From the NCBI GenBank assembly GCA_002269645.1, contig NIVC01000435.1, forward strand, positions 62,001-126,000: 64,000 nt of DNA. Direction: 5' to 3'. Source of the DNA: Macrostomum lignano (lineage: Eukaryota). Position numbers and translations under genes: made by a program. The notes under the pieces were generated by a model, which made no database searches, was not told where the DNA came from, and saw nothing but the letters and a program-made list of their open reading frames with translations. Shown here one piece after another: positions 4,425 through 34,969 of this stretch (positions within the stretch are counted from its first letter, which is position 1; each line of letters starts with the position of its first letter).

Positions 4425-7400
4425 ATGGTTTGCGTGTCAGTACTAGCCGATGCACTGAATCGAATTGTGCACGCCGAGAAGAAGGGCAAACGCCAGGTCC
4501 TTCTCAGGCCTTCGTCAAAGGTTATCATTCGCTTTCTGCAGGTAAATAGACTGATCAAATAAAATTGTATTTCCCTCACTGTTTCGCATCATCATCATCA
4601 TTCAAGTGTCACATTATCATCATCCCAGTGTTTCATCATCATATTCCAGTGTCTCATAATCATCATTCCAGTGTCTCACTATCATCATCATTCCAGTGTC
4701 TCATTATCATCATCCCAGTGTCTCATCATCATATTCCAGTGTCTCATAATCATCATTCCAGTGTCTCACTATCATCATCATTCCAGTGTCTCATTATCAT
4801 CATCCCAGTGTCTCATCATCATATTCCAGTGTCTCATCATCATATTCCAGTGTCTCATAATCATCATTCCAGTGTCTCATCATCATCCCAGTGTCTCATC
4901 ATCATATTCCAGTGTCTCATCATCATCATCCCAATGTCTCATCATCATATTCCAGTGTCTCATAATCATCATTCCAGTGTCTCATCATCATGCCAGTGTC
5001 TCATTATCATCATTCCAGTGTCTCATCATCATCATCCCAGTGTCTCATCATCATCATCCCAATGTCTCATCATCATATTCCAGTGTCTCATAATAATCAT
5101 TCCAGTGTCTCATCATCATGCCAGTGTCTCATTATCATCATTCCAGTGTCTCATAATCATCATTCCAGTGTCTCATTATCATCATCCCAGTGTCTCATCA
5201 TCATATTCCAGTGTCTCATCATCATATTCCAGTGTCTCATAAACATCATTCCAGTGTCTCATTATCATCATCCCAGTGTCTCATCATCATATTCCAGTGT
5301 CTCATCATCATATTCCAGTGTCTCATAATCATCATTCCAGTGTCTCATAATCATCATTCCAGTGTCTCATAATCATCCCAGTGTCTCATTATGATATTCC
5401 AGTGTCTCATCATCATATTCCAGTGTCTCATAATCATCATTCCAGTGTCTCATCATCATGCCAGTGTCTCATTATCATCATTCCAGTGTCTCATCATCAT
5501 CATCCCAGTGTCTCATCATCATCATCCCAATGTCTCATCATCATATTCCAGTGTCTCATAATAATCATTCCAGTGTCTCATCATCATGCCAGTGTCTCAT
5601 TATCATCATTCCAGTGTCTCATTATCATCATCCCAGTGTCTCATCATCATCATCCCAATGTCTCATCATCATATTCCAGTGTCTCATCATCATATTCCAG
5701 TGTCTCATAATAATCATTCCAGTGTCTCATAATCATCATTCCAGTGTTTCATCATCATGCCAGTGTCTCATTATCATCATCCCAATGTCTCATTATCATC
5801 ATCCCAGTGTCTCATCTTCATCATCCCAGTGTCTCATCATCATAATCATCCCAGTGTCTCATTATCATCATCCCAGTGTCTCACTATCATCATCATCCCA
5901 GTGTCTCACCATCATAATCATCCCAGTGTCTCATAATCATCATTCCAGTGTCTCATCATCATCATCCCAATGTCTCATTATCATCATCCCAGTGTCTCAC
6001 CATCATAATCATCCCAGTGTCTCATCATCATCACCCCAGTGTCTCACTATCATCATCATCCCAGTGTCTCACCATCATCATCCCAGTGTCTCACCATCAT
6101 CCCAGTGTCTCACCATCATCATCCCAGTGTCTCACCTTCATCATCCCAGTGTCTCACCTTCATCATCCCAGTGTCTCACCATCATCATCCCAGTGTCTCA
6201 CCTTCATCATCCCAGTGTCTCACCATCATCATCCCAGTGTCTCACCTTCATCATCCCAGTGTCTCACCTTCATCATCCCAGTGTCTCACCATCATCATCC
6301 CAGTGTCTCACCATCATCAATCCAGTGTCTCACCATCATCATCCCAGTGTCTCATCATCATCATCCCAGTGTCTCACCATCATCATCATGCCAGTGTCTC
6401 ATTACCATCATCCCAATGTCTCATCTTCATCATTCCAGTGTCTCACTATCATCATCATCCTAATGTCTCATCTTCATCATCCCAGTGTCTCACTATCATC
6501 ATCATCCCAGTGTCTCATCTTCATCATTCCAGTGTCTCATCATTATCATCCCAGTGTCTCACTATCATCATCATCCCAGTGTCTCACCATCATAATCATC
6601 CCAGTGTCTCATAATCATCATTCCAGTGTCTCATCATCATCATCCCAGTGCCTCATTATCATCATCCCAGTGTCTCATTATCATCATCCCAGTGTCTCAC
6701 CATCATCCCAGTGTCTCACCTTCATCATCCCAGTGTCTCACCATCATCATCATCCCAGTGTCTCACCATCATAATCATCCCAGTGTCTCACTATCATCAT
6801 CATCCCAGTGTCTCACCATCATAATCATCCCAGTGTCTCATAATCATCATTCCAGTGTCTCATCATCATCATCCCAGTGTCTCATAATCATCATTCCAGT
6901 GTCTCATCATCATCATCCCAATGTCTCATTATCATCACCCCAGTGTCTCACCATCATCATCCCAGTGTCTCACCATCATCATCCCAGTGTCTCACCATCA
7001 TCATCCCAGTGTCTCACCATCATCATCCCAGTGTCTCACCATCATCATCCCAGTGTCTCACCTTCATCACCCCAGTGTCTCACCTTCATCATCCCAGTGT
7101 CTCACCTTCATCATCCCAGTGTCTCACCATCATCATCACAGTGTCTCACCATCATCATCACAGTGTCTCCATCATTATCATCCCAGTGTCTCACCATCAT
7201 CATCCCAGTGTCTCACCATCATCAATCCAGTGTCTCACCATCATCATCCCAGTGTCTCACCATCATCATCCCAGTGTCTCACCATCATCAATCCAGTGTC
7301 TCACCATCATCCCAGTGTCTCACCATCATCATCCCAGTGTCTCACCATCATCAATCCAGTGTCTCACCATCATCCCAGTGTCTCACCATCATCATCCCAG

Positions 7401-9241
7401 TGTCTCACCATCATCAATCCAGTGTCTCACCATCATCCCAGTGTCTCACCATCATCATCCCAGTGTCTCACCATCATCCCAGTGTCTCACCTTCATCATC
7501 CCAGTGTCTCACCATCATCATCATTCCAGTGTCTCATCATCATCATCCCAATGTCTCATTATCATCACCCCAGTGTCTCACCATCATCATCCCAGTGTCT
7601 CACCATCATCATCCCAGTGTCTCACCATCATCATCCCAGTGTCTCACCATCATCATCCCAGTGTCTCACCATCATCATCCCAGTGTCTCACCTTCATCAC
7701 CCCAGTGTCTCACCTTCATCATCCCAGTGTCTCACCTTCATCATCCCAGTGTCTCACCATCATCATCCCAGTGTCTCACCATCATCAATCCAGTGTCTCA
7801 CCATCATCATCCCAGTGTCTCACCATCATCATCACAGTGTCTCACCATCATTATCATCCCAGTGTCTCACCATCATCATCCCAGTGTCTCACCATCATCA
7901 ATCCAGTGTCTCACCATCATCATCCCAGTGTCTCACCATCATCATCCCAGTGTCTCACCATCATCAATCCAGTGTCTCACCATCATCCCAGTGTCTCACC
8001 ATCATCATCCCAGTGTCTCACCATCATCAATCCAGTGTCTCACCATCATCCCAGTGTCTCACCATCATCATCCTAGTGTCTCACCATCATCCCAGTGTCT
8101 CACCATCATCATCCCAGTGTCTCACCATCATCATCCCAGTGTCTCACCATCATCAATCCAGTGTCTCACCATCATCATCCCAGTGTCTCACCATCATCAT
8201 CCCAGTGTCTCACCATCATCAATCCAGTGCCTCACCATCATCCCAGTGTCTCACCATCATCATCCCAGTGTCTCACCATCATCAATCCAGTGTCTCACCA
8301 TCATCCCAGTGTCTCACCATCATCATCCTAGTGTCTCACCATTATCCCAGTGTCTCACCATCATCATCCCAGTGTCTCACCATCATCAATCCAGTGTCTC
8401 ACCATCATCCCAGTGTCTCACCATCATCATCCCAGTGTCTCACCATCATCAATCCAGTGTCTCACCATCATCCCAGTGTCTCACCATCATCATCCCAGTG
8501 TCTCACCATCATCAATCCAGTGTCTCACCATCATCCCAGTGTCTCACCACCATCATCCCAGTGTCTCACCATCATCATCCCAGTGTCTCACCACCATCAT
8601 CCCAGTGTCTCACCATCATCATCCCAGTGTCTCACCATCATCAATCCAGTGTCTCACCATCATCCCAGTGTCTCACCACCATCATCCCAGTGTCTCACCA
8701 TCATCATCCCAGTGTCTCACCATCATCAATCCAGTGTCTCACCATCATCCCAGTGTCTCACCATCATCATCCCAGTGTCTCACCATCATCATCCTAGTGT
8801 CTCACCATTGTGCTACCTGTCTATTTATCTGAATACCCGTGTAATTTAATCCTAGCTTACACCTGCCTGACTACATTGCATAATTCCCCTTCCTGTTGTG
8901 CATCCAGACTTTCAGTGTATCCGCCTCATTACCACAGTTTCCCATCGCCCCTTCTTCATCTGCAGGTGATGCAGCGCAAGAACTACATCGGCGACTTTGA
9001 GGTCATTGACGATCACCGGTCCGGCAAAATCGTAGTAGAACTGAATGGCCGATTGAACAAGTGCAGCGTAGTCTCGCCTAGATACGATATCCACTTGAAA
9101 GATCTGGAAAAGTGGACCTCGGCTATTCTGCCATCGCGCCAGTTCGGCTTCATTGTGCTCACCACCTCCGGCGGCATCATGGACCACGAGGAGGCCAGGC
9201 GGAAGCATCTGGGCGGCAAAATCTTGGGCTACTTTTTCTAG
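4425..9241 (+). CDS. RPS15A: 40S ribosomal protein S15a (uS8), 130 aa; join(4425..4541,8966..9241)
   Basis: Exon 1 [39 protein letters not shown]|gtaaat. Exon 2 ctgcag|[33 protein letters not shown]...[18 protein letters not shown]. Phase-0 intron gives the canonical 130 aa. Confidence 0.97.
4590..8810 (+). repeat. ~4.2-kb minisatellite, ~20-24-bp unit (CCCAGTGTCTCA[C/T]CATCATCAT), filling the RPS15A intron
   Basis: About 200 units visible by eye. 5' variants (TCAT/TTCCAG) grade into 3' variants (TCAC/CCCAG). A block at ~6900 recurs at ~7530 (offset 630). Confidence 0.97.
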
Positions 9242-10240: not shown

Positions 10241-10719
10241 TGTTACACACAGCCTGGCAATTGAAACTAGTACTTGCAGAAATAAAAAAATAAAACAGCT
10301 GTAACGCAGCACTTTATAAAGTACTGATAGCTCTTTAGGTTGACTTAAAAAACTATCTACGAGCGTACATTAGACATTGTCATTTTTGTCACAGCAATTT
10401 ATTTGACTACATAATTCCAGATTGAGCTAACATATTAATTGTATTTATGAAACAAAATGCGCTAGAAACCTCACAATAAATAAGGGCACAGATTGTTTAT
10501 ATCAATAACTGTATGCAGTATCGTGCGTCAATACATTACAAGCAAGCAGGAAAGATCAGCTAGATAAAAGGACACTAATTTCTACCCAATCGGAAAGCAA
10601 ATTCAAGCTTATCAAAGACTAATCTAAGATTTACTCAAAAGCCTCTACACAGATCTCGAAAGAACCCGAAATTCGTAAAAAATCTTTAACTCGGTGATAA
10701 ATCGCTCTTAAATCCATGA

Positions 10720-11400
10720 GAAATCACCCTCAAACTAAAGAAATCGCTCTTAAACTCCATGAGAAATCACCGCCAAAATTCACGATAAATCGCTCGCAAT
10801 CTCGATGAGAAATCGGCCTCAAACTCTGAGAAATCGGCCTCAAACTCTATGAGAAATCGGCCTCAAACTCTATGAGAAATCGGCCTCAAACTCTGTGAGA
10901 AATCGGCCTCAAACTCTATGAGAAATCGGCCTCAAACTCTATGAGAAATCGGCCTCAAACTCGATGAGAAATCGGCCTCAAACTCTATGAGAAATCGGCC
11001 TCAAACTCGATGAGAAATCGACCTCAAACTCGATGAGAAATCGACCTCAAACTCGATGAGAAATCGGCCTCAAACTCTATGAGAAATCGGCCTCAAACTC
11101 GATGAGAAATCGACCTCAAACTCGATGAGAAATCGACCTCAAACTCGATGAGAAATCGGCCTCAAACTCGATGAGAAATCGGCCTCAAACTCTGTGAGAA
11201 ATCGGCCTTAAACTCTATGAGAAATCGGCCTCAAACTCTATGAGAAATCGGCCTCAAACTCTGTGAGAAATCGGCCTTAAACTCTATGAGAAATCGGCCT
11301 CAAACTCTATGAGAAATCGGCCTCAAACTCGATGAGAAATCAACCCCAAACTCCATGAGAAATCGCCCCGGAACTTCCTGAAATATCGCCCTCACAATGC
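10720..11400. repeat. 23-bp minisatellite (ATGAGAAATCGGCCTCAAACTCT)
   Basis: Period 23 (10861/10884), with degenerate edges. Confidence 0.95.
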
Positions 11401-11454: not shown

Positions 11455-14400
11455 TCAAAACATGAAAAAGGCCAGCGCTAGACAAGCCAGCAAAGCCACC
11501 GAGCAAATCAGCAGAATCCACTGCCAGTCCGGTGGCAGCTGGCTCAGCCGGAATCTCAGCAGCATCCGCCTGCAGGACAGCGCAATCTCCTGACTACTAC
11601 TATCAGTAGCAGAGTCTAGCACTACAGGCGGCGCTGCCGGTTCGCATGGCAACGTGTGCGACGCTAAAATACGACCATCTTTTGCGTCGACAACAGTGAC
11701 GCGACTGTAGCCAATGGCAACAACAACAGTTAACTGGTTTCGATTGGACTTGACTTGCCAGCCAATCAAATACGGGCCGCTGTCGCCGTTGCCGTCCCAG
11801 CGCGACTCGGTGGCCACGCGCCAGCGAAGCTGATCGCCGATGCTCTTGAAAGTGAACCCACCGCCGATGCCGACGTGAGCCGATAAGATGCCGTCGCCGG
11901 ACAGGATGACAACAATGCGACTGGACTTGGGAAAACCTGGATTATTGGGAATTAGAAAAGAATTGAAATATAAAAAAATATTTTGAGTCCCACAGTTTAC
12001 TGAAGCCACCTGTTCATAAACTGAAGCGTCTTCTTGTGAAACTAAGTAAAGCTGTTTTTTGAAAAGTTATTTGAAAAATAGAAACTGTTTCTTGGAAACA
12101 AACTAGAAGCTGTTTCTTGGAAAAAAAACTAGAACTGTTTCTTGGAAACAAACTAGAAGCTGCTTCTTGGAAACAAACTAGAAGCTGCTTCTTGGAAACA
12201 AACTAGAAGCTGCTTCTTGGAAACAAACTAGAAGCTGCTTCTTGGAAACAAACTAGAAGCTGCTTCTTGGAAACAAACTAGAAGCTGCTTCTTGGAAACA
12301 AACTAGAAGCTGCTTCTTGGAAACAAACTAGAAGCTGCTTCTTGGAAACAAACTAGAAGCTGCTTCTTGGTAACAAACTAGAAGCTGCTTCTTGGAAACA
12401 AACTAGAAGCTGCTTCTTGGAAACAAACTAGAAGCTGCTTCTTGGAAACAAACTAGAAGCTGCTTCTTGGAAACAAACTAGAAGCTGCTTCTTGGAAACA
12501 AACTAGAAGCTGCTTCTTGGAAACAAACTAGAAGCTGCTTCTTGGAAACAAACTAGAAGCTGCTTCTTGGAAACAAACTAGAAGCTGCTTCTTGGAAACA
12601 AACTAGAAGCTGCTTCTTGGAAACAAACTAGAAGCTGCTTCTTGGAAACAAACTAGAAGCTGCTTCTTGGAAACAAACTAGAAGCTGCTTCTTGGAAACA
12701 AACTAGAAGCTAGTTCGTGGAAACTCGAAGCACTTTCGTGGAAACAACACTAAATCTGTTTCTTGGAAAAAAACAAGAAGCTGTTTCTTGGAAAAAAAAC
12801 TAGAAGCTGCTTCTTGGAAACAAACTAGAAGCTGCTTCTTGGAAACAAACTAGAAGCTAGTTCGTGGAAACTCGAGGCACTTTCGTGGAAACAACACTAA
12901 ATCTGTTTCTTGGGAAAAAACTAGAAGCTGTTTCTTGGAAATAAACTAGCTGTTTCTTGGAAACAAACTAGCTGTTTCTTGGAAACAAACTAGAAGCTAG
13001 TTCGTGGAAACTCGAAGCACTTTCGTGGAAAAAACACTAAATCTGTTTCTTGGAAACGATCTCGATGCTATTCTTAGAAACAACACCAGAACTGTTTCTT
13101 GGTAACTCGAAGCCGTTATGTAAAAACAGCACCAAAGCCGTTTCTTGGAATCTATTCCGAACTCGTGCGAAAATCTTGCGATAGTCTTTCTTGGATAATG
13201 TCCTGACTAACCTCTTCAAAAATCATCTCAAATCTTTGCCGTAAAACAATATTCTCTCACCAAGCAGGTGTCCCAGCAAGTCTCTCCAACCGCCCTGCTG
13301 TCCCGGCGGTGTCGGCAGCAGCAGAGGCACCGCCGGCGTCAAAAAAGAGGTCGTCGACTCCTCAACCGATTCGCACAGATTCTCAAACCGACGCACCCTA
13401 TCGGGCCGATCTTCAACGCTGGCCGCCTCGGCTGTGCAATTCGGTCCCAAGCCGACTCGAATAGCTCGGTCGTCTCGACTGTCAACAATGTCGTAGGCTC
13501 CCGGCCGGCCGTCGAGTAGAAGCCGGTGAAGCCTGACTCCGCTGCTCGGATCGTAGAGATCGATGGAGTCGCCAAGGCGAAGTGCCAACACGTTGCCATC
13601 GCGACGGTGACTGGCAGAGCTGGGAGCGCCCTGACTGTCAGAGCTGCTGGGACAGTGCAAGCAGGCTGAGAGCAGCTTGGCGTCCGAGTCGGAACGCCAG
13701 CTGAATGGCTGCAGTTTTGTTCAATTTGCTCAAATAACTTTAGCAGTTTAATTTGCTCGCATTTCTACTGTTAGTAGAGAAAATAGATTTTTTATTTTGG
13801 AGGACTATGCGACTGGCGTTTTATGATGTAAATTTCCGGGGATTAAGGGATGTGGCTATTGGGGGATTTAGGAATGTGACTGTCAGGGGATTATAGGATG
13901 TGACTGTCAGGGGATTGAGGGATGTGACTGTCAGGACATTGAGGGATGTGACTGTCAGAGGATTGAGGGATGCGACTATCAGGGGACTAAGGGATGTGAC
14001 TGTCAGAGGATTAAGGCATTAAGCTGTCAGGGGATTAAGGGATATGACTATTAGGGAATTTGGGATTAAGCTGTCAGGGGATCAAGGGATGTGACTATTA
14101 GGGGATTAAGGGATTTAGCTATCAGGGGATTAAGGGATTTAGCTATCAGGGGATTAAGGGATTTAGCTATCAGGGGATTTTGGAATTTGGATATTGATAG
14201 CTAATTATGGAATTTACTATTTAGCGGTAACTAGTGTAATGTTTTCAGGACTTGTTAATTAACTAGATTTTCTTTAGATATTGCCTTACACACTCAAATA
14301 CTGCATGTAATGCATGTAATAAGTAGGCTGTTTAGCAAACTTACCGTTATGGCCTGATAGACTGGCAGCACGGACTCAAATGAACGAGCATTGGCCAGCC

Positions 14401-16556
14401 GGCGAGTGAGCAGATGTCGGGCCCACTCCAGCTTCCAGTGGTGGCTCACGCCGCTCTTGTCGTGACCCTGCGATTTTTCATTGCGGTGAACAGACGGTGA
14501 GAATCGATGTTTTTTAAAAGACGCGATCCAGTCATCCTTGATGTGACCGCTGGGTGACTCTCGACTATGACATTATGAGTGCCCCTACACTGTGACTACT
14601 GGAGTGACCCTACACAGTGACAACTGGAGTGACCCTACACTGACTACAGGAGTGACCCTACACTGTGACTACTGGAGTGACCCTACACTGTGACTACGGA
14701 GTGACCCTAAACTGTGACTACTGGAGTGACCCTACACTGTGACTACTGGAGTGACCCTACACTGTGACTAACTGGAGTGACCCTACACTGTGACTAGAGT
14801 GACCCTACACTGTGACTACAGAGTTACCCTACACTGTGACTACTGGAGTGACCCTACACTGTTACTACTGGAGTGACCCTACACTATGACTACAGAGTGA
14901 CCCTACACAGAGTGACCCCGGAGAAGCGCACACTAAACCAATGAAAAAACTCACTAAATCGTGTTGCTCAGCCGTAGAGGAACTGTGCGGATAATTCTGC
15001 CACACCAGCGAGCCATTGTTTAAATTGAATGCCAGTAAAACTGGCGGTAGCAAATCGGCTGCCGTTTGGTTTAAACTGCGTTGATTTTGAAAAGAATTGA
15101 ACAAATGCAGTATGCAGAAAAAATAGATTAACGCTCTAGTTTTTCTACTGTTAGTAGAAAAGCAAAAATATGTTGAATCAAGTAGAAAAAAAAATTAAAC
15201 GCTAATTTTTCTACTGTTAGTAGAAAAGCAAAAATATGTTGAATCAACTACAAACTCTTCAGAATAAAAAAACTTACTCAAATCCGATTGGTCCAGACTT
15301 ATCAACCAATCGATACGCGGCAACCATCAGCAAACAGGTGAACACCCTGGAGCCCTGCCGGCAGTGAGTCCTAATTATAGTCATAGATAGCGGCTTGGCT
15401 ACGTACGATGACAGTAGCATGGAATGCAAACTGGACAATGGATTCAGGCTATAAAGGTGCTTTAATTGGCCGCTGCGCTGTCCCAGCTCTTGGTTGTCAG
15501 ATAAAGAATACACATGCAGATGGCCACTGGATGACTGGGCAACAACGAACTGAAAGCAGGGCAAAAATTATTGAGTTGATTACTGGGTAAACAGAATACA
15601 CTCACAATAGCACAGGGAATTGTACATCTGAGGAGAATTAATACCCCTTGAGCATTATAGAACAAGGAACATAACGCAACCCACCAACTGTTTTCCAACA
15701 GTTGCAGTCTCAAGCGCCAATGGCATTCTTCCCATTCCAGCATCCGCTCCTATGTCAGGCAGCTGGGCCAGCACTCGATGCGGCCAGCTAGCCAGGGTTC
15801 TAAGCGACGTCTTCAGCGGCTGCTGATCAAGGCCAACTAGCCAGCCGTCTCCAGCGTGGCTGATCCAAGCCATCTCATTCAGCTCCGGCTGCTTGCCATG
15901 CTCACCTGTAAATGGGAAACGATTTTTCTACAGAATGTTAGATTTTTCTAGGTTAATGCGGGCGACATTTTTCGGGCGATGTGAGAGTTTTATCTAGTCA
16001 AATTTTTATTCGTCTACTTTTCTCAGTAGTCTAAATTGAATCTTTTACATAGAGATTGAAAGAGAGGTGGCCCTTACAAGGGCCGTTTTTCGCCGTTAAA
16101 TAAGCTGCGATCGGCAATTCAAGGATTAAAAAAGTAATTAAGCTCTTTTAGAGGACTGATTATTCTAAATGCCAAGATTCGTTTGCTTTTTTCCTTAGGT
16201 TTTGCCAAAAATAATTAATTAGAACTTACAAATTATTTACCTTTAAGCTTATTCGCACTATTAAATTGAGCAGGCACCGGAGTCAATAGAAACTGCTTAG
16301 CAACAAAATCTGCATTGGCTTCACCATCAAGATCGAAATAGGCTGTGGGCACCAGCTCCCAGTCAGACTGATGCTCACTAGCTAAACGATATGCAAATGC
16401 AGCAAATAATATGCAGGCAATTTGTAATTTTGACAAATAGCTGCGTTTTGCTGGCTGACTCTGCTGGCGCTGGGTGGCCTGTGTTGGCATTGATGACAGT
16501 CGCTGCTGATGCCTTGACCTTCTATTAGATCCCTGCTGCTGGTGCACAGTTTCCAT
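11455..16556 (-). CDS. FG-GAP/beta-propeller membrane protein of the plant NERD1 (At3g51050)-like family, ~660 aa; complement(join(11455..11936,13261..13708,14345..14467,14955..15075,15278..15549,15685..15905,16241..16556))
   Basis: All six introns are GT-AG with consistent phases (1,0,2,0,0,1); total 1983 nt. N-terminal hydrophobic stretch and C-terminal TM helix. Motifs collinear with recalled At3g51050: RVLAQLPD...GRMPLAL, PFSWRSDSD, NVLALRLGDSIDLYDPSSG, WRVATESRW, GRILASHTLPCEP. Exon structure is well supported; the family call is from memory. Confidence 0.8.
12080..13150. repeat. 25-bp minisatellite (TTCTTGGAAACAAACTAGAAGCTGC) in intron 6 of the NERD1-like gene
   Basis: Period 25 (12181/12206). 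Near-perfect core ~12150-12710, degenerate flanks. Confidence 0.97.
13838..14190. repeat. ~24-bp degenerate minisatellite (GGGATTAAGGGATGTGACTGTCAG) in intron 5
   Basis: Period ~24 visible. Confidence 0.9.
14575..14920. repeat. 25-bp minisatellite (GGAGTGACCCTACACTGTGACTACT) in intron 4
   Basis: Period 25 (14701/14726/14751). Confidence 0.95.
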
Positions 16557-20325: not shown

Positions 20326-23300
20326 ATGAAGTATCCTATTGCAATACTTATCATATTTTGTGTTTGTCCAGAGTTTGGACATGCAAACAGAAGAGTGCTT
20401 TTATCAACTGTTCAGACTTTGACGCTTCACCGTGACAAATTTACTACTGGTCGACGAAGCAGTCCAATTCCACAGCTAAAATGCATTGATGGCAAAAGCA
20501 GCTGTTCAAATCTTCCATCTTCTGTTCAATGTTACAACCAAGGATCAGATGGAATTGATGTTCAGTGGAAGTGTGAAGCTCAGCTGCCTAAGAGCACCCA
20601 ATTTGATAAACTTCAGGTAGGCCTCTATCACCTGCATTCTGTAACAAATAAAAAAATTACATTTTACAATTGTAGAATATAGGCCTATTTCACAATTTTG
20701 TTTGAGCTTAATAAGGTGTAAGCCATGGTTCAAAATAAGTTTGAGTTAGTTGATTTAACATGACATACATTAAAAATAAAGCTAAATCTATACAAGATAC
20801 AAAAAGATAAAAAAGATGGCAATCCTTTAGTTTACAACCACTGTCTATTTTGTTAGTTTTGGTTTATGATCACCTTCTATTTTTCAAGTTTTGGTTTACG
20901 ATCACCTTATATTTTGCTTACTGCAGTGCAAAAATGGTGTGTTCAAAACTAAGATATAAAAACCAATGATAGTTTCAAATGAAAAGAAAACAAAAGTTGG
21001 CTGATCAACTAACTTTGTTTATTTGAAATTGAAAAGATTTGTACATCAGTTCACTAGTAGGGCCTAGCTTATATATATATATCACCTTTGGTTTACAATC
21101 ATCTAAAGCTGGCTATAGGAAAGCATGTCAACCCTAGCTTAGTATAATTAATCTTCAGCACCGCACCCCTTCACTTTTGGTTTACAATCACTTCCACACA
21201 TGCATTCCATTGAAATAATCATGAACCAAAGCTGGCTATAAGAAAGCATGTCAACCCTTAGTATACTTTCTTAAGGCCAGCTTTGGTTCACAATCATTTT
21301 AATGGGCAACATACATTTGGGTGATCATAAACCAAAGGTGAAATATATAGGCTACTGTAGTTCAAACTTGCAACTTGACAGTTGAAATTAGTTTGATAGG
21401 TTTTCCTACTGCCAGCTTCGGTTTGCAATCAATGGGTAACATACTTTTGGGTGATCGTAAACCAAAGGTTAAATATAAGGTGCTACAACTATCTTACCAT
21501 CTTTTGAAATAAACAAAGTCAGTTCGCCAATATTTGATTTTGTTTCATTGGAAACTATGGATTTTATGTCTTACAACTGTTTTTTGTGATAAACGTCACT
21601 GTTTGGGATGATTTTAAACCAAAGGAATGCCAAAAAGACAATGAATAGGTCTAGGCCTAGGTCTAAATGCTAAAGGATCAAAACAATAAGGCCTAGGCCT
21701 AGTGAAAAAGGGCAAAATCAAAAAAATTGGGGGCAAGTTTTTTGTAAACTTGTTTTTTAGCAATTTGAAAGCAATGAAGCTATAAAATAAATTTATTTGA
21801 GTTTTTAAAGGTTAGAAACATTTATAAAAGTTTAAATGTATTGACAAACATGTTTGCCAAACATGACAGGCTGATGCATTTGAATGTACTTAGAATTTGC
21901 CAAAACTCTGCTTCCTAATAAACAAATATCATTATTTCTTATTATTTCCAATTTACTACTTTGAGTATGCTTAATAGATTCTACTGTTTCTAGTTTAGTT
22001 TGCCTTAAATATAGAATATTTATGCTATAATAAATTTCTCGACATGTCAATAATATAAAGTGTATTGCCTTTTTATACAAGAATTGGTTCCAGAACTAAT
22101 CAGAAAGTGAAAAGTGCTCATTAGATCTTTTTAGACTTCAGTCTAAGAAATAGACTATAGAAGAAATAAACTACAAGCTTGTCTCTCCTCTCCCTTCTCT
22201 CCCTCCCTCTGGCCTTTGAGCTAAAAAAGTTTGCCAACCCCTGCTTTAACTCAATATAGGCAAGTGCATTCTGGAGTTGGTAAAGCAGGGTGCAGATGCT
22301 AATTAAGTGGGTCTGTTTGTACACATAGAAAACCAAAGCCGATTTTTGCAGCTTCAAAAAAACAAAAATCTTGTAATTTTTCATTTTTAAGGCAAAAACG
22401 CTGGTTATTCTACTGATAGAAAGTAGATAAAGACATTTATCTAGTTATTCTGGTATCTGTTTTTACTAAGCTGTTTAACCTTGTAATTTGAGTGTCATAC
22501 AATTGATTGATTCATATTTTAAAGGATACAATTTTTGGAATTGCAAAATTTCTATTAACTGTCAATTTTTTACTTCATGCTCAATTTTACCTTAAAAATT
22601 CAGGTTCAGTGCGAGGGCTATGACTATCCTGATGACCCCTACATCCTAGCCGGCTCGTGCGGCCTCACCTACTCGCTGAAGCCAGCCGGCGGCAGCCGCA
22701 GTCATAAAAGCCGGTCTGGTCATAAGAGTCGCAGTCATCGCCAAGCTGCTAGCGATTCGGACAAATCTGTCTCGCCAGTCATTGTGATTGCTGTTCTGGC
22801 CATTGCTGGCTATTGCATCTATGCATTCTTCTTAGCACCGTCCGCTAACCGCGTGTCCAACGACCCCAGCGCTCCGCCGCCGCCAGCTTATGACGATTAT
22901 AATGATGGCGACCAGCCTCCGCCTTATACTCCGGGCGGTCCAGGTGCGCCGCAATACGGATTCCGGCCTGAGTTCACTGCCGGCGCTGGTAGCAGTCCGG
23001 GAGGCTATGGAAAAGTGAGTCATTAGAATAGGAAAATTAGCTCTCAGTATCGATTTTTTATGATTACTGTTTTTTAGTTTCGATTTTTAGGTTTATCGAT
23101 TTTCCGTATCGATTTTTTAGGATTATTGATTTTCCGTATCGATTTTTTAGGATTATTGATTTTCAGTATCCATTAATTTCGGAATATTGATTTTCAGTAT
23201 CGATTAATTGAGGATTATTGATTTTCAGTATCCATTAATTTCGGAATATTGATTTTCAGTATCGATTAATTGAGGATTATTGATTTTTAGTATCGATTTA

Positions 23301-25746: not shown

Positions 25747-28700
25747 TCACAGCTGTGCCACGGTCAGCATGCCGGTGAAGCAGACGGTTGCAGCGGTGAA
25801 GCCGCCCAGAGCCAGGTAGAGCACTCCAGCCGGGCCGACGCTTGGCGATATCAGCAGGTGGCCGGCCAGTGCTGGCAGCACCGAGACACCCAACTGGCTG
25901 CCGATGGTCCAGCTGCAGGCCAGAGGCCCGGTGACATCAAGCCGCTCCTCCAGCCAGGAGATGCCGCCGGCGTAGATGCTGGCGACGGCCAGGCCGAACG
26001 CCGCTGTGCTGGCGGACGTCAGCCAGGCTGGGGCGCCGGCGTCCAGCGAGAAGTCGCCAGCCAGGAGGCAGAGCGTTGCTAGGGAGATCTGCAGGTGAGT
26101 TCGAGAGCGAGGATTATGTTAGTAAATATTTTTACATTTTTACAGGTAATCAAGATACAGTTAAAAATGTGACTCTGACGGCGATGACATTGGAAAGTGA
26201 ACGACAATATCCAAACGCTACAATGAGAGTGAATGACAGTGTCCCTAAGCTTCGGGGAGTGAATGACAGTGTCCATTAAGCTTCAGGGAGTGAATGACAG
26301 TGTCCATTAAGCTTCAGGGAGTGAATGACAGTGTCCACTAAGCTTCAGGGAGTGAATGACAGTGTCCACTAAGCTTCAGGGAGTGAATGACAGTGTCCAC
26401 TAAGCTTCAGGGAGTGAATGACAGTGTCCACTAAGCTTCAGGCAGTGAGTGACAGTGTCCACTAAGCTTCAGGGAGTGAATGATAGTGTCCACTAAGCTT
26501 CAGGCAGTGGATGACAGTGTCCCTAGGCATCATAAAGTGAATGACAGTGTCCCTAAGTTTCAAGGAGTGAATGAGTGTCTCTAAGCTTCAGGGAGTGAAT
26601 GACAGTGTCCATTAAGCTTCAGGGAGTGTATGATAGTGTCCACTAAGCTTCAGGGAGTGAATGGCGATGGCAAACATGAGTTCATTAAGCGAGACTAGAA
26701 TCATAAAGCAATGCCGGTGCCCCAAGCGCCAGACAGCGGACATAAAAACCAATACTCCGACCTGGCAGGCGGCCAAATCCGCAAGCAGCAGAGTCGTAGG
26801 CCGCACGCACCGGGCCAGCGCCACGCCAAGGCAGCGGCCGGCCAGAAAGCCGCCAAAGAAGGCCGCATTCAGCGAAGTCAGGCGCAGCCGGCTGCACACT
26901 CCGTAGGCATTGATAAACGACCAAAACACGTTTTCAACTCCGACAAAGCAGAAATAGAAGGCGACAGTCAGGGCTACCAGGAGGCGGCGTCGCCAGAGCG
27001 GCAGCGACCCGGGCTTGCTAGCGACACTCGCTGGTAGTAGAACTTCCACTTCCACGACAGCTAATTTAGTCTTGATTGTCGCAGGCGGCACAAGTCGGTG
27101 TCGACAGGCTAGCAGTGCGAGAAAGCCCACAGCTGCCAGAGCTTGAGCAGCGTGCACCACAGCGAATGGTGCAAATATTGGTAGATGCAGAGTCGGCTGC
27201 GACCGACTGCTGACGCTGCTGGCAGTGCTGGATTGCGTGTAGTTCATCAGAGAGTCAACTGTTGAGTTAAATACAGCTTCCGGGTCTGATGATGGAGCTT
27301 GACAGAGGCTGAGACGAAGACTGTCCAGGGTTGAGTTAGCTGTGTCTTCGCTGACGGCAATGTTGTCGACGGGAAACGGTGGGCTTTCCGCCGCTGGCGG
27401 TTGCCAGTTGCGAAACTGGTGCAGCAGCGCCGGGGCGGAGAGGGCGCCCAAGGCCACGGCCAGGTGCAGAGACTGAAGCACCGGGCGGGAGTGCTGCGAG
27501 CCGAATAGCACGATGACCAGAATGCCGTCGGCTGCGGGTCGGTCACGTGACATTGGACCTAAGCTGTCAGGAGTTCAGAATTTATGTACTTTTGTCACAA
27601 CTCTCATACAGGGTGTGCATCGATTCTGACCTAGAAAAATTGTAATTGCTCTTGATTGGAGGCAGACCCAATGTTCTTCGTTTGATATGACTTAATTTGA
27701 ATGACGTGTGTGTAGGCAGGGACAACTAAAACTAGTTTAAGTTGTCCCTGGTGTGTAGGCTAAAAATTAATATAGAATCCCTATTTTCTAAACACATATC
27801 ATATATCAGTAATATCAATAGAGTATCATTAGAGCTATATAAGAAAGGCACAACATATCATACCCTTCCTGACCTTAAATATCCTAGCCTCCCTGACCTT
27901 AAATATCCTCACCCTCCCTGACCTTAAATATCATCACCCTCCCTGACCTTAAATATCCTCACCCTCCCTGACCTTAAATATCCTCACCCTAACTGACCTT
28001 AAATATCCTCACCCTAACTGACCTGAAAATCCTCCGATATAACTCTCCATTCAACCTTTAACCGAGTTCCATCTCACCAGTCTCAAGCGCGCTCTGGCCG
28101 GCGCCCAGCACCCCGGACAGCGTCAGCGATGTCCACAGACTCCGCGCCATCGGCAACGCCAGCAGAGCGGCAGCACAGATTAGATTTGCCGCCACTAAGA
28201 AGCCCAGCCTCTGCCTGGACTTTGGCAGCGAAGGAATGGCGAATCCGGTGACTATAGCGAGTAGGCAAGCGGCGGCCGATTTGACGGTGAACCAGAGACC
28301 CATGACGCGGAGACTGGCGCCGACTCGGCTGGCCAGGACCAGCAGGCAGCCGCCAGGCAGAGCGTTGGCCGCTCCGGTGGCGGCATGGGCGAGCCACATG
28401 AACAGCAGCGGCGCCCAGTGCCGGCGCAGCACCAATCGCATCTGGTTTTTTTTAATAAAAATATTTTCGCTAGTCTGTAAGAGTTCGTCTACTGACTAGT
28501 AGAATGTAAAGCGTTTGAAGAAAAAAATCTTGCAGTGATTTGCGCAGTTCTCAGCATATGGCTATATTTAATGCTTTACAATGCGCCAGCACCAAGGGGC
28601 GCCAGCACCAAGGGGCGCCAGCACCAAGGGGCGCCAGCACCAAGGGGCGCCAGCACCAAGGGGCGCCAGCACCAAGGGGCGCCAGCACCAAGGGGCGCCA

Positions 28701-31253
28701 GCACCAAGGGGCGCCAGCACCAAGGGGCGCCAGCACCAAGGGGCGCCAGCACCAAGGGGCGCCAGCACCAAGGGGCGCCAGCACCAAGGGGCGCCAGCAC
28801 CAAGGGGCGCCAGCACCAAGGGGCGCCAGCACCAAGGGGCGCCAGCACCAAGGGGCGCCAGCACCAAGGGGCGCCAGCACCAAGGGGCGCCAGCACCAAG
28901 GGGCGCCAGCACCAAGGGGCGCCAGCACCAAGGGGCGCCAGCACCAAGGGGCGCCAGCACCAAGGGCGCCAGCACCAAGGGGCGCCAGCACCAAGGGGCG
29001 CCAGCACCAAGGGGCGCCAGCACCAAGGGGCGCCAGCACCAAGGGGAGCCAGCACCAAGGGGCTTTAGCCATCAAAAAAATATAATTTTGCCAGACTATG
29101 TGGCGGGCCACAGCCCATCTTCCCCCTGGCCACGCCTCTAAAAGTGCGCATGCATGTACATGTACATTCACTCACGGGAACGGATTTGCCAGGCACTGCA
29201 GCGCAACCAGTGGAAGCTGCAGCCTCAATACGACTTAGATCAGCGGCAGTCTCTGGTGGATCAATAGATTTATCCAATAGGCAGTTCTCCCTGATGCTAA
29301 TCGAATAGTCCTTCTCTTGCTGTTCCGGCTGTTGCACTTCTTCTGTACTGCTTCTGCTGCTGCTGCTGCTGCTGCTACTAGAAGCCAGCAAGCCATACTC
29401 GACTGAATCTGCTGGTTCTGATGAATCTGGCAAAGAAATTGTTTTGGCTTTTTGGTTCGACTGGCTTGTCTGGTAGCTTGCTGTGTTCTAGATATTGTAG
29501 TAACGGAGACAGTTCCGCCTAGTAATTACCGAAACATTCCACCTGAGCAATTGAGACATTTTCCCTTAGCAACTGACATATTTGTCCCTTAGCAATTGAG
29601 ACATCTTCCCTTAGCAATTGATTCATCTTTTCCTTAGCAACTGAGACATTTTTCCCTTAGCAACTGAGACATTTTTCCCTTAGCAATTGAGACATTTTTC
29701 CCTTAGCAATTGAGACATTTGTCCCTTAGCAACTGACACATTTTTCCCTTACGATTGAGACATATTTCCCTTAGCAATTGATTCATCTTTTCCTTAGCAA
29801 CTGAGACATTTTTCCCTTAGCAACTGAGACATATTTCCCTTAGCAATTGATTCATCTTTTCCTTAGCAACTGAGACATTTTTCCCTTAGCAACTGAGACA
29901 TTTTTCCCTTAGCAATTGAGACATATTTCCCTTAGCAATTGATTCATCTTTTCCTTAGCAACTGAGACATTTTTCCCTTAGCAACTGAGACATTTTTCCC
30001 TTAGCAACTGAGACATTTTTCCCTTAGCAATTGAGACATATTTCCCTTAGCAATTGATTCATCTTTTCCTTAGCAACTGAGACATTTTTCCCTTAGCAAT
30101 TGAGACATTTTCCCTTAGCAACTGAGACATTTTTCCCTTACCAATTGATTCATATTTTCCTTAGCAACTGAGACATTTTCCCTTAGCAACTGGGAGACAT
30201 ATTTACCTAGCAATTGAGACATATTTCCCTTAGCAACTGAGACATATTTACCTAGCAACTGAGACACTATTCCCTTAGCAACAGAGACATTTTTCCCTTA
30301 GCAACAGAGACATTTTCCCTTAGCAACTGACACATTTTTCCCTTACGATTGAGACATATTTCCCTTAGCAATTGATTCATCTTTTTCTTACCAACTGAGA
30401 CATTTTTCCCTTAGCAACTGAGACATTTTCCCTTAGCAACAGAGACATTTTTCCCTTAGCAATTGAGACATTTTCCCTTAGCAACTGAGACATTTTTCCC
30501 TTAGCAACTGAGACATTTTTCCCTTAGCAACTGAGACATTTTCCCTTAGCAACTGAGACATTTTTCCCTTAGCAATTTAGACATATTTCCCTTTGCAATT
30601 GAGACATATTTCCCTTAGCAACTGAGACATATTTACCTAGCAACTGAGACACTTTTCCCTTAGCAACTGAGACACTTTTCCTTAGCAACAGAGACATTTT
30701 CCCTTAGCAACTGACACATTTTTCCCTTACGATTGAGACATATTTCCCTTAGCAATTGATTCATCTTTTTCTTACCAACTGAGACATTTTTTCCCTTAGC
30801 AACTGAGACATTTTCCCTTAGCAACTGAGACATTTTTCCCTTAGCAACTGAGACATTTTCCCTTAGCAACAGACATTTTCCCTTAGCAATTGAGACATAT
30901 TTCCCTTAGCAATTGATTCATATTTTCCTTACCAACTGAGACATTTTTCCCTTAGCAACTGAGACATATTTACCTAGCAACTGAGACACTATTCCCTTAG
31001 CAACTGAGACATTTTTCTTAGCAACTGAGACATTTTGCCTTAGCAACTGAGCATTTTCCCTTAGAAACTGAAACATTTCTTAGCAAATGAAGACATTACT
31101 CTACAAACCGAAATATTTTTGCTTTGACAACTTCCGTAAAAGGAGTTGGAACATGCTGATGCTACGCCTTCAAATATTCGAGTACATGTACTTTTATAAG
31201 AAGCAATATTATACCGATCATATTAAATCAATTAGAAATTTAATCTTACCCAT
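25747..31253 (-). CDS. MFSD4: MFS transporter, MFSD4/NaGLT1-like, ~576 aa; complement(join(25747..26088,26762..27531,28078..28441,29176..29426,31250..31253))
   Basis: Multiple TM helices. LETADGILVIVLFG...PVLQSLHLAVALGALSAP matches the MFSD4 pattern LDTGGNVL...GPYMQALHFSFALGAFLAP; YFCFVGVENVF and ASIYAGGISWLE also fit. Phases are consistent (1,0,1,0). The 4-nt first coding exon and the exon-4 acceptor (27531 vs 27558) are inferred. Confidence 0.8.
26228..26660. repeat. 31-bp minisatellite (AAGCTTCAGGGAGTGAATGACAGTGTCCACT) in MFSD4-like intron 4
   Basis: Period 31 (26341/26372). Confidence 0.95.
27870..28025. repeat. 25-bp minisatellite (CCCTCCCTGACCTTAAATATCCTCA) in intron 3
   Basis: Period 25 (27901/27926), ~6 copies. 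Confidence 0.9.
28583..29062. repeat. 17-bp GC-rich minisatellite (GCGCCAGCACCAAGGGG), ~28 copies, in intron 2
   Basis: Near-perfect period 17; stop-free, so it creates spurious ORFs in all six frames. Confidence 0.98.
29545..31080. repeat. ~23-bp minisatellite (TTCCCTTAGCAACTGAGACATTT) with variant sub-units, in intron 1
   Basis: ~1.5 kb. A variant GATTCATCTT unit recurs at intervals, giving higher-order structure. Confidence 0.95.
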
Positions 31254-32109: not shown

Positions 32110-32860
32110 TTGTCTGATGTACAGTTGGGTGAGTGTGTCACACCTGGCTGCTGAGTGTCTGATGTACAGTTGGGTGAGTGTGTCACACCTGGCTGCTGTG
32201 TCTGATGTACAGTTGGGTGAGCGTGTCACACCTGGCTGTTGTGTCTGATGTACAGTTGGGTGAGCGTGTCACACCTGGCTGTTGTGTCTGATGTACAGTT
32301 GGGTGAGTGTGTCACACCTGGCTGCTGAGTGTCTGATGTACAGTTGGGTGAGTGTGTCACACCTGGCTGTTGAGTGTCTGATGTACAGTTGGGTGAGTGT
32401 GTCACACCTGGCTGTTGTGTCTGATGTACAGTTGGGCGAGTGTGTCACACCTGGCTGTTGTGTCTGATGTACAGTTGGGTGAGTGTGTCACACCTGGCTG
32501 TTGTGTCTGATGTACAGTTGGGTGAGCGTGTCACACCTGGCTGTTGTGTCTGATGTACAGTTGGGTGAGTGTGTCACACCTGGCTGCTGTGTCTGATGTA
32601 CAGTTGGGTGAGCGTGTCACACCTGGCTGTTGTGTCTGATGTACAGTTGGGTGAGCGTGTCACACCTGGCTGTTGTGTCTGATGTACAGTTGGGTGAGTG
32701 TGTCACACCTGGCTGTTGAGTGTCTGATGTACAGTTGGGTGAGTGTGTCACACCTGGCTGTTGTGTCTGATGTACAGTTGGGTGAGTGTGTCACACCTGG
32801 CTGTTGTGTCTGATGTACAGTTGGGTGAGTGTGTCACACCTGACTGTTGTGTCTGATGTC
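32110..32860. repeat. 43/45-bp minisatellite (GTCTGATGTACAGTTGGGTGAGTGTGTCACACCTGGCTGTT[GT/GAGT])
   Basis: Periods 45 and 43 (32112/32157/32200), ~17 copies. Confidence 0.97.
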
Positions 32861-34018: not shown

Positions 34019-34969
34019 TTATTGATTAGCCAACGGAGGCGGCCGCTCCGGCACCAGCGAAGTGATGAAGGCCACAAGCGTAGTTAGTAGAGCGTCCAAA
34101 AAGGCCGCCAAAGTTTCTGTTAGAGTGGCGGCGCGCTGCGGTGGCGCCGGGCCCGGCGCCTCTTGCGAAGCGCCAGATTCCGATGGCGCACCGGCAGCGT
34201 CGGGCTCGGTGACCTCAGCTGGAGCGGCTGCTGGAGGCGCTGCCGCTTCAGCAGCGGCTGGATTTCTCACAAACAGCCGGTGCAAAAACCCAGCCTGAAT
34301 AACTTGCATAACAAAGAATATAGCGAAAGCGCTGATTGCTTTGCCAGCCGAACTATAATAGAAAATGATTAACGACATCAAGGCGCAACGGACGGCAATG
34401 TGAAACCATTCGCGTATACCGCCAGCACCACCGTTCACTCGGGCTTCGGCTGCGTCCAGGGCGGCGGCGCCTCCATCCAGTTCGGCTGCAGGATCTGGGG
34501 CTATCGGGAGTTGCTGTTGTTGTTGTTGCTGCTGCTGCTGCTGTTGCGGCTGGAACCTCTGGCGCACGCAGTCGCGATAATGAGTCAGCACATATTGCGA
34601 GTACTCATGCCACAGTGCTGACAGCTCGTCATTGTTGTCATGATTACTACTATGAGCAATCAATGATGCCGAGGCACCCATGGACATGGCTGGAGCGCTG
34701 ATGCTTCTAGCTGGCGATGAGCAAGCGCCGCCTGGCAACACCAGGTGTACAACTCGAGCTGGCGCCTGGCTTTGGCCCAATGCCTGGCCAAGCGGCTCCT
34801 CGTTGTCTAGCAACCGGCCAGCATATACAATTCGTTGAGTGTCGGCCGCTGGCCTGCCCGGATACACCTGGCTAAGGTGCTGCTTCAATTCGGACACTCG
34901 CCAGTTGGCTTGGCAACTAATGCTGACATCTCTCTCGCGACCAGATGGGCAGCGGATTGTGATCTCCAT
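34019..34969 (-). CDS. HERPUD: Herp (HERPUD1/2-like) ERAD ubiquitin-like membrane protein, 316 aa, intronless CDS
   Basis: N-terminal Ubl (WRVSELKQHLSQVYPGRPAADTQRIVYAGRLL), hydrophobic LMSLIIFYYSS...MQVIQAGFL segment, and C-terminal FITSLVPERPP, all typical of Herp. Confidence 0.9.
   Translation of the reverse strand: MEITIRCPSGRERDVSISCQANWRVSELKQHLSQVYPGRPAADTQRIVYAGRLLDNEEPLGQALGQSQAPARVVHLVLPGGACSSPARSISAPAMSMGASASLIAHSSNHDNNDELSALWHEYSQYVLTHYRDCVRQRFQPQQQQQQQQQQQQLPIAPDPAAELDGGAAALDAAEARVNGGAGGIREWFHIAVRCALMSLIIFYYSSAGKAISAFAIFFVMQVIQAGFLHRLFVRNPAAAEAAAPPAAAPAEVTEPDAAGAPSESGASQEAPGPAPPQRAATLTETLAAFLDALLTTLVAFITSLVPERPPPLANQ

Follow-up and report, generated by a model that had tools for sequence, protein, structure and literature searches.

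The locus and its gene model

A stretch of 64,000 nucleotides from the genome of the flatworm Macrostomum lignano (NCBI GenBank assembly GCA_002269645.1, contig NIVC01000435.1, positions 62,001 to 126,000 of the forward strand), referred to below as the window and numbered from its first letter, carries on its minus strand a gene that runs from 16556 to 11455 and comprises seven exons and six GT..AG introns. Its 1983 nt of coding sequence specify a protein of 660 aa which, as judged by sequence comparison, is a very divergent member of the NERD1 (At3g51050-type) family.

The gene model was obtained by translating 16700-11300 in the three minus-strand frames, which gave seven open segments with the frame changing between them, and by enumerating the splice sites. 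Listing of GT donors and AG acceptors left one exon chain, in which the exon-2 donor alone was ambiguous (15700, 15685, 15676 or 15664); 15685 was chosen because the public gene model P0032 (see below) reproduces exons 1-4 and because the family motif RKQV/GKQL falls at that point. From the start ATG at 16556 to the stop at 11455-11457, one frame stays open through 660 codons (exon coordinates in Table 1). The 5' ends of the introns read GTAAAT, GTGGGT, GTAAGT, GTGAGT, GTAAGT and GTGAGA, the 3' ends are all CAG, and the GC content of the exons (46-62 %; 55 % for the whole coding sequence) compares with 27-49 % in the introns. Another exon-1 donor at 16259 (ATA/GTGCGA) was rejected, being a weak site with which P0032 disagrees. 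An in-frame ATG at 16583 on the minus strand, nine codons 5' of the chosen start, would prepend MLLTFSCVL; which of the two is used would follow from where transcription starts or trans-splicing occurs. The complete seven-exon reading frame of about 660 codons that had been proposed in a preliminary description of this DNA is confirmed in its length, in its six canonical introns and in the agreement of the available public gene models with exons 1-4.

Two UniProt entries of M. lignano match the spliced protein at 99-100 % identity (profile version of a word-index search). P0032 (A0A1I8GT.., 309 aa, 'WD40 repeat domain-containing protein') corresponds to exons 1-4, with identical junctions and one amino acid substitution; P0033 (A0A1I8J.., 299 aa, 'LAM_G_DOMAIN') has exon 2 mis-joined to the middle of exon 6, followed by read-through of the exon-6 donor. 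Neither automatic name fits the protein. Since the public models differ from the window protein by 1-4 residues, other alleles or copies of the gene exist. For the full-length 660-aa protein and four gene-model variants, no exact entry was found in a collection of 15 billion proteins. A word-index search of proteins with the complete 660-aa sequence gave no match either, but the same tool also missed relatives that an exhaustive search recovered, so that its negatives are uninformative.

Membership of the NERD1 family

The relatives of the protein were sought by an exhaustive HMMER search with the 159-aa last exon against a library of 1.84 billion representative proteins, which returned 18 matches at E < 1e-3. 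Among these are proteins of 670-701 aa from Ptychodera, Octopus and Capitella, aligned collinearly at their C-terminal ends, together with fragments from Acropora, Solemya, Echinostoma caproni (176 aa) and UPI000602F47E (source unstated); in the databases, the relatives are named 'uncharacterized' or 'FG-GAP repeat-containing'. The top match and three more long multi-repeat proteins were rejected as relatives on account of their many short-stretch matches, and the two of them that were scanned are bacterial SprB-repeat proteins. Such spurious matches were drawn by WDGNGDSG (aa 547-554), which sits in a loop where the relatives have a longer, unrelated insert.

The Theobroma orthologue of NERD1 (PMC6022600, supplement) served as the plant reference, with E values calculated for a nominal database of one million. 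Since the proteins of Ptychodera, Octopus and Capitella match it at E 9e-63, 6e-45 and 1e-41, respectively, they belong to the NERD1 family; the weakest of the named exon-7 relatives still gives 3e-6. The window protein, in turn, scores 60.2 bits against a mixed six-sequence family profile (best of 2000 shuffles, 4.9 bits) and 65.9 bits against a second family profile (maxima <=5 bits in 1000-2000 shuffles), with the segments aligned by HMMER (aa 283-385 and aa 477-657) in collinear order. By region, aa 400-660 contribute 59.5 bits (shuffle maximum 3.0) and aa 270-400 contribute 14.3 bits (shuffle maximum 2.6), while hhalign pairs aa 38-198, within the first 302 aa, with positions 13-169 of the family N-terminal halves (P 4.7e-5, probability 68 %). 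These comparisons indicate collinearity with the family along the entire protein, with support declining from the C-terminus to the N-terminus.

The divergence is considerable. Identity to every relative is 17-21 %, as against 29-36 % among the other animal proteins and 24-28 % between those and plants. Nevertheless, the protein preserves 29 of the 56 near-invariant family columns (>=85 % conserved) and, towards the C-terminus, 18 of 26. Retained residues include C443/C463, W547, W555, G601, G613, P622 and P625 (Ptychodera numbering), whereas C156 and W41 are lost. Pfam finds nothing significant in the window protein, the best match being PQQ_2 at E 0.14, and the FG-GAP families (PF01839, PF13517) give no match at E up to 10; FG-GAP scores of other family members are themselves weak or borderline.

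With the plant and green-algal NERD1 proteins, the window protein shares a similar length (660 aa against 698 aa in Arabidopsis), the N-terminal hydrophobic segment, a predicted luminal beta-propeller and one C-terminal transmembrane segment, as well as a series of collinear blocks (HF..A..G..RW, HHxKL, PHxW, PN..V....GIE, the C...C pair, WQV...W and GW.....DG..LA.H.LP..P). It differs in being only ~20 % identical, in its three rewritten Asp-rich loops, in having no cytosolic tail (18-23 aa in plants) and in a 43-aa basic N-terminal extension in place of a short cleavable signal peptide. The collinearity with At3g51050 that had been noted in the preliminary description is upheld by way of the animal members and not directly: a plants-plus-green-algae profile gives the window protein 9.1 bits and an animals-only profile 62.2 bits, which makes the link to Arabidopsis NERD1 a transitive one.

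Membrane layout and predicted fold

Both hydrophobic segments named in the preliminary description are present. The N-terminal one, LQIACILFAAFAYRLA, spans aa 44-59 with a core of only ~16 residues (modelled helix, aa 43-61) and is preceded by 43 basic, Gln-rich residues with 7 K/R against 1 D/E. The C-terminal transmembrane segment, WILLICSVALLACLALAFFMF (aa 640-660), has 21 residues and a mean Kyte-Doolittle value of up to 2.9, and abuts the stop codon. The layout is that of the family, in which a signal or anchor at the N-terminus is followed by ~600 aa of predicted luminal domain and then by a single C-terminal transmembrane helix, and the same two helices appear in a model of the Ptychodera member. 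The family's cytosolic tail is missing, as the open reading frame (ORF) ends ...LAFFMF at the stop codon. A glycosylphosphatidylinositol-anchor signal was considered for this tail-less C-terminus and set aside on our own reading of the sequence, in which RLSQLPPDWQ, ahead of the spacer, lacks the usual small omega/omega+2 pair.

An AlphaFold2 model of the Ptychodera member, built with 24 family sequences, reaches a pLDDT (predicted local distance difference test) of 76 and a pTM (predicted template modelling score) of 0.76 and comprises an N-terminal helix, a beta-rich core and the C-terminal transmembrane helix. When compared with PDB by Foldseek, this model finds dehydrogenases dependent on pyrroloquinoline quinone (PQQ), BamB and BBS propellers (E ~1e-10, TMt up to 0.58, ~10 % identity). 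The resemblance to the PQQ-dependent alcohol dehydrogenases and BamB, which are 8-bladed, is at the level of fold only, as these proteins differ from the family in identity, in cellular context and in the PQQ and catalytic features, of which the family has none. The searches against PDB agree with the threading published for plant NERD1 (PMC6022600).

At the sequence level, no PDB chain is significantly matched by the family profile, the best being YesW/YesX (PL11 rhamnogalacturonan lyases) at E 0.1-0.6, via loop 1 only. The generic propeller fold and the D-x-D/N-x-D-G hairpin are common to the family at large and to the integrin alpha N-terminal domain, YesW/YesX, CRTAC1, ITFG1, ITFG2 and FAM234A/B; the sequence relationship to these FG-GAP propellers is not significant (best PDB E 0.12, YesW, loop 1 only). 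The N-terminal half of the window protein itself was modelled at pLDDT 61 as a transmembrane helix followed by beta strands, which is compatible with propeller blades and counts as weak evidence. From the sequence comparisons, the ~580-aa central part of the protein is identified as homologous to the NERD1-family beta-propeller.

The three acidic loops

Comparison of 19 full-length members, which range from sponge to angiosperm, yields three near-invariant loops, (T/A)D(L/I)(D/E/N)(S/G)DG for loop 1, D(V/I/L)(N/D)xDG for loop 2 and D(F/Y)xxDGxxD for loop 3, each of which joins two consecutive strands of one blade in the Ptychodera model. The strings to which the preliminary description had drawn attention (AQFNSANK, YDIVDSRD and LDSATDSS) do align under these three loops, the placement of the first being moderately supported. 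In loop 1, AQFNSANK (aa 96-103), D1, D5 and G6 are lost and an 11-aa insert, KLKGEHGKQPE, follows across the junction of exons 1 and 2. The sequence of loop 2 is DSRDDRAIR (beginning inside YDIVDSRD, aa 423-430), which keeps D1 and D5, with Arg at positions 3, 6 and 9. Loop 3, DSATDSSSQE (with LDSATDSS at aa 607-614), likewise keeps D1 and D5; position 3 is Ala, G6 is replaced by Ser and an additional residue precedes the last acidic position.

The window protein thus has none of the three Asp-rich FG-GAP hairpins that the family conserves, and the sequence indicates that the acidic loops are lost while the scaffold (Cys pair; blade Trp, Gly and Pro) is retained. In other animal homologues, loops 1 and 3 hardly vary (TD[LI][ED]SDG and GDF[ND]NDG) and a short acidic C-terminal tail is present; the window protein lacks all three. 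The fragments of Echinostoma and UPI000602F47E have a similarly degenerate loop 3, with insertions. As to the loss of calcium binding proposed in the preliminary description, the alteration of the loops stands; the loss of binding itself is a reading of motifs, and loops 2 and 3 each keep two acidic positions. In plant NERD1 too, calcium binding is a RaptorX prediction (PMC6022600).

Position among animals and shared introns

Animal homologues of NERD1 from Nematostella, Lottia, Crassostrea, Saccoglossus and Strongylocentrotus appear in a table of 2018, together with eight amoebozoans (Cole et al. 2018, PMC6022600, Dataset S1). With the Ptychodera protein as query, further members came up in hemichordates, sea stars, crinoids, an annelid, gastropods, a nemertean, a sponge and green algae. 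Vertebrates, insects and nematodes are absent from both the 2018 table and the search matches, neither of which is exhaustive. Named animal members now include Saccoglossus LOC100378520 (PMC6022600) and, from this analysis, Ptychodera XP_070575140.1, Capitella CAPTEDRAFT_224542 and the proteins of Octopus, Owenia, Tubulanus, Ephydatia and Acropora; the window protein resembles them in its 62-bit profile match, in shared intron positions and in the two-anchor layout. Its closest relatives are Echinostoma caproni A0A183AQL5 (176-aa fragment, E 7e-6) and UniParc UPI000602F47E (319-aa fragment, E 3e-7; both E values from the library of 1.84 billion proteins), which are 24-25 % identical to it over the aligned part.

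A neighbour-joining tree of 250 well-aligned C-terminal columns (200 bootstraps) unites the window protein, Echinostoma and UPI000602F47E in a clade with 97.5 % bootstrap, placed inside the animals, and recovers plants and algae as monophyletic in 100 % of the replicates. The gene structures, a line of evidence that does not depend on sequence similarity, point the same way. In Owenia fusiformis, the gene spans 5.7 kb with 9 exons, and in Ptychodera flava 21.9 kb with 17, and the gene structure of the family must be ancient because seven of the eight annelid introns match hemichordate introns exactly in position and phase. In the window gene, the intron before codon 352 (after exon 5) falls in the same alignment column, at phase 0, as those at Owenia codon 321 and Ptychodera codon 317 (...T/PFSW against ...L/PHSW); the intron before codon 180 (after exon 2) lies one codon off another intron shared by Owenia and Ptychodera, both at phase 0; and the intron before codon 311 lies three codons off a third, of equal phase, in a linker of variable length. 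A rough estimate puts the chance of finding two of six introns within one codon at ~0.2-1 %. Taken together, the profile scores, the tree and the intron positions show that the gene descended vertically within the animals and rule out a plant donor; the phylogeny that the preliminary description had called for, to tell vertical retention from horizontal transfer, came out in favour of the former.

Surroundings of the gene

The remaining genes of the window are collected in Table 1 along with the exons. The neighbouring homologues of SARAF and RPS15a and the ubiquitin-like membrane protein, together with the near-identical M. lignano models, sustain the earlier view of an animal homologue. The 316-aa ubiquitin-like protein, which looks HERPUD-like, has no exact counterpart in the 15-billion-protein collection. 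Rfam and tRNA scans of the 64,000 nt found nothing.

Table 1. Exons and motifs of the NERD1-type gene, followed by the other annotated features of the window (aa, amino acid positions of the 660-aa protein)
Feature	Position	Strand	Description
Exon 1	16241..16556	-	aa 1-105 + 1 base; start codon, basic N-terminus; donor AAG/GTAAAT; junction as in P0032
Exon 1, helix	16380-16427	-	aa 44-59
Exon 1, DLDGEANAD	16308-16334	-	aa 75-83
Exon 1, AQFNSANK	16248-16271	-	aa 96-103
Exon 2	15685..15905	-	aa 106-179; begins within the 11-aa insert KLKGEHGKQPE and finishes at the family motif GKQL; junctions as in P0032
Exon 3	15278..15549	-	aa 180-269; junctions as in P0032
Exon 4	14955..15075	-	aa 270-310; carries LLAFNLNNGSLVWQ, counterpart of family HFSTYALSGxDGxxRW
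Exon 5	14345..14467	-	aa 311-351; carries HHWKLE (family HH[WF]KL)
Exon 6	13261..13708	-	aa 352-500; PFSW (family PHSW)
Exon 6, loop-2 counterpart	13460-13495	-	YDIVDSRDDRAI, aa 423-434
Exon 6, Cys pair	13373-13438	-	C442/C463; conserved in the family
Exon 7	11455..11936	-	aa 501-660 + stop; most conserved region (GYSRVTVVDAKDGRILASHTLPCEP)
Exon 7, WDGNGDSG	11775-11798	-	aa 547-554
Exon 7, DSATDSSSQE	11587-11616	-	aa 608-617
Exon 7, transmembrane segment	11458-11520	-	aa 640-660, followed by the stop
RPS15a, last exon	8960-9241	+	Pfam Ribosomal_S8, E 1.6e-12; directly after a 4.2-kb minisatellite
SARAF homologue, exon	22577-23026	+	store-operated calcium entry regulator; Pfam PF06682, E 3e-23
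316-aa single ORF	34019-34969	-	N-terminal ubiquitin-like domain (PF00240, E 1.5e-6), poly-Gln run, hydrophobic C-terminal segments
Coiled-coil ORF	53573-55444	+	84-bp (28-aa) repeats of type LESAESELESAKSNIEQLE; a 64-bp tandem repeat ahead (53508-53998) is open in several frames

The window is rich in minisatellites. Four different arrays lie in or next to the gene, in intron 6 (12075-13106), intron 5 (13838-14179) and intron 4 (14577-14908) and at 10688-11365, from ~90 bp past the stop; their units measure 25, 24, 25 and 23 bp, respectively, repeated in 14-42 copies at 81-90 % identity. Across the window, there are ~20 unrelated arrays with units of 15-43 bp (for example 4589-8808, 29542-31078, 47760-48987, 32111-32859 and 55448-56013). 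The one at 4589-8808, a 4.2-kb array with 193 copies of a 22-bp unit, produces spurious long ORFs rich in His, Ser and Pro in all three plus-strand frames; the 16-bp unit GCGCCAGCACCAAGGG, present in 30 copies of 99 % identity at 28583-29063, leaves frames open on both strands. At 41105-42169, a 178-bp unit repeated six times at 97 % identity within AT-rich surroundings is satellite-like.

Interpretation and alternatives

At a probability of roughly three in four, the gene is read here as an intact, spliced gene for a single-pass-anchored propeller of the NERD1 family that was inherited vertically, belongs to a long-branch flatworm group with Echinostoma caproni and has its cation sites disused. 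The basic N-terminus and the short hydrophobic helix would then act as a signal or signal-anchor. The propeller would accordingly face the lumen of the secretory pathway, which in plants means the Golgi, and membrane anchorage would fall to the C-terminal helix, with no cytosolic tail beyond it. The three D-x-(D/N)-x-D-G-x-x-D hairpins of the family, which are predicted to bind cations on one face of the propeller, are rewritten in this protein; with the structural positions kept, the luminal propeller would still be expected to fold, the three sites no longer being in use. The gene would then not be dead, and its product may bind, or serve as a scaffold for, luminal glycoconjugates or cargo independently of calcium.

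Several observations weigh against this interpretation. As a putative single chain, exons 5-7 rest on frame, splice consensus and homology. With HMMER, aa 1-340 reach 2.8 bits against the family profile, below the shuffle maximum of 6.0, which is not significant. Long-branch attraction among the three long branches may inflate the 97.5 % support. Localisation and binding are extrapolated from a plant protein that is ~20 % identical, and the Golgi localisation, the role in root growth and the genetic interaction with the exocyst are established for Arabidopsis NERD1 in plants only (PMC6022600, PMC6386413). Furthermore, the acidic residues have not all gone: DLDGEANAD (aa 75-83) offers oxygen ligands (D, D, E, N and D) at positions 1, 3, 5, 7 and 9, followed by hydrophobic FVA, and could be a working cation loop; WDGNGDSG forms a second Asp/Gly-rich loop; and D1 and D5 persist in loops 2 and 3. 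Short block hidden Markov models gave no significant match for either placement of loop 1.

These last points bear on the best-surviving alternative, which we regard as unlikely though worth taking seriously, namely that calcium or another cation is still bound through relocated or partly kept sites (DLDGEANAD, WDGNGDSG, or D1 and D5 of loops 2 and 3, the equivalents of D419/D423 and D633/D637 being retained). One global MAFFT run, a poor-quality alignment of the 309-aa fragment with full-length proteins, did set DLDGEANAD under loop 1, and the block models do not separate the two placements; however, three MAFFT alignments and hhalign set AQFNSANK there. The AQFNSANK placement requires a single 11-aa insertion, whereas that of DLDGEANAD costs a deletion of ~22 aa and an insertion of ~35 aa. 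A phase-1 intron, moreover, lies just past loop 1 in Ptychodera and within the insert in the window gene, which suggests that the insert arose by splice-site shifts. The AlphaFold2 model of the N-terminal half shows strands at aa 94-96 and 115-121 and leaves aa 62-88 unstructured, but it inherits the alignment from which it was built and is hence not independent. In loop 2, the three Arg residues speak against a cation site. On balance, AQFNSANK is probably the true counterpart of loop 1 as far as the alignments can tell, a placement that falls short of certainty because the N-terminal 280 aa are weakly matched (HMMER not significant, hhalign P 4.7e-5).

A clearly less probable explanation is relaxation or decay: M. 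lignano has a duplicated genome, and this copy of the gene would have lost its function. The identity of ~20 % to all relatives, as against 29-36 % among other animals, would fit this, as would the alteration of all three hallmark loops, the missing cytosolic tail and the further near-identical copies or alleles revealed by the public models. Nevertheless, 660 codons in seven exons are free of stops and frameshifts, all splice sites are canonical and the Cys pair has been conserved along with other structural invariants. Since the other copies differ by 1-4 residues only, the divergence is old and did not follow duplication; and since Echinostoma and UPI000602F47E share an altered loop 3, this alteration is lineage-wide and persistent. 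Decay is unlikely on these grounds, that is, the intact frame and splice sites, the near-identity of the copies and a loop-3 change held in common with a trematode.

There is very little to recommend the view that the protein belongs with some other membrane propeller, FG-GAP or not (FAM234, ITFG1/2 or integrin-alpha-like), and resembles NERD1 in layout only. The silence of Pfam and the lack of significant family similarity in the N-terminal third are what it could appeal to, but the profile matches of 60-66 bits are specific and collinear, the interpretable matches of the exhaustive search are all of NERD1 type (a best match to FAM234, ITFG or some other family, which the preliminary description had named as the outcome that would overturn it, did not appear), and intron positions are held in common with Owenia and Ptychodera. 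No Pfam match to FAM234, ITFG1 or ITFG2 and no relative so named was found, with no FAM234 or ITFG1 sequence compared directly; the family profile searched against PDB gave no integrin chain and, within the KICSTOR entries, kaptin alone (E ~1.7) and not ITFG2. Horizontal transfer from a plant or alga, which could draw only on the best-studied member being a plant protein and on the patchy distribution in animals, is dismissed in view of 9 bits against the plant and algal profile and 62 bits against the animal one, the nesting of the protein inside animals in the neighbour-joining tree, spliceosomal introns at animal-shared positions, animal genes on either side and the presence of the family from sponge and coral to deuterostomes.

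Beyond the gene itself, a tentative and rather doubtful extension is that all three acidic loops were rewritten flatworm-wide (in Macrostomum and at least one trematode) with the fold kept, in a luminal propeller that is otherwise extremely conserved among eukaryotes, as a switch of ligand or of cation dependence. Under such a switch, which we would not favour as things stand, loop 2 would have turned basic and loop 1 would have acquired its disrupting insert where an intron boundary lies.

Implications for the NERD1 family

Metazoan homologues of NERD1 have been known since 2018 and the databases contain many more members without a name; what is new here is an unusually divergent member together with its full-length model. 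NERD1-type proteins span amoebae, plants, sponges and deuterostomes. In the lists compiled, the main animal model organisms have no NERD1-type proteins. A complete gene model is now available in a laboratory flatworm, where the annotation had two broken fragments with misleading automatic names, and it indicates that the most conserved motif of the family is dispensable while the scaffold stays. The finding is of use for annotation and for studies of the family; it is a modest one and leaves the overall picture of the family unchanged. If a flatworm-wide switch of the loops were true, RNA interference and transgenesis in M. lignano would provide the first experimental handle on NERD1-type proteins of animals.

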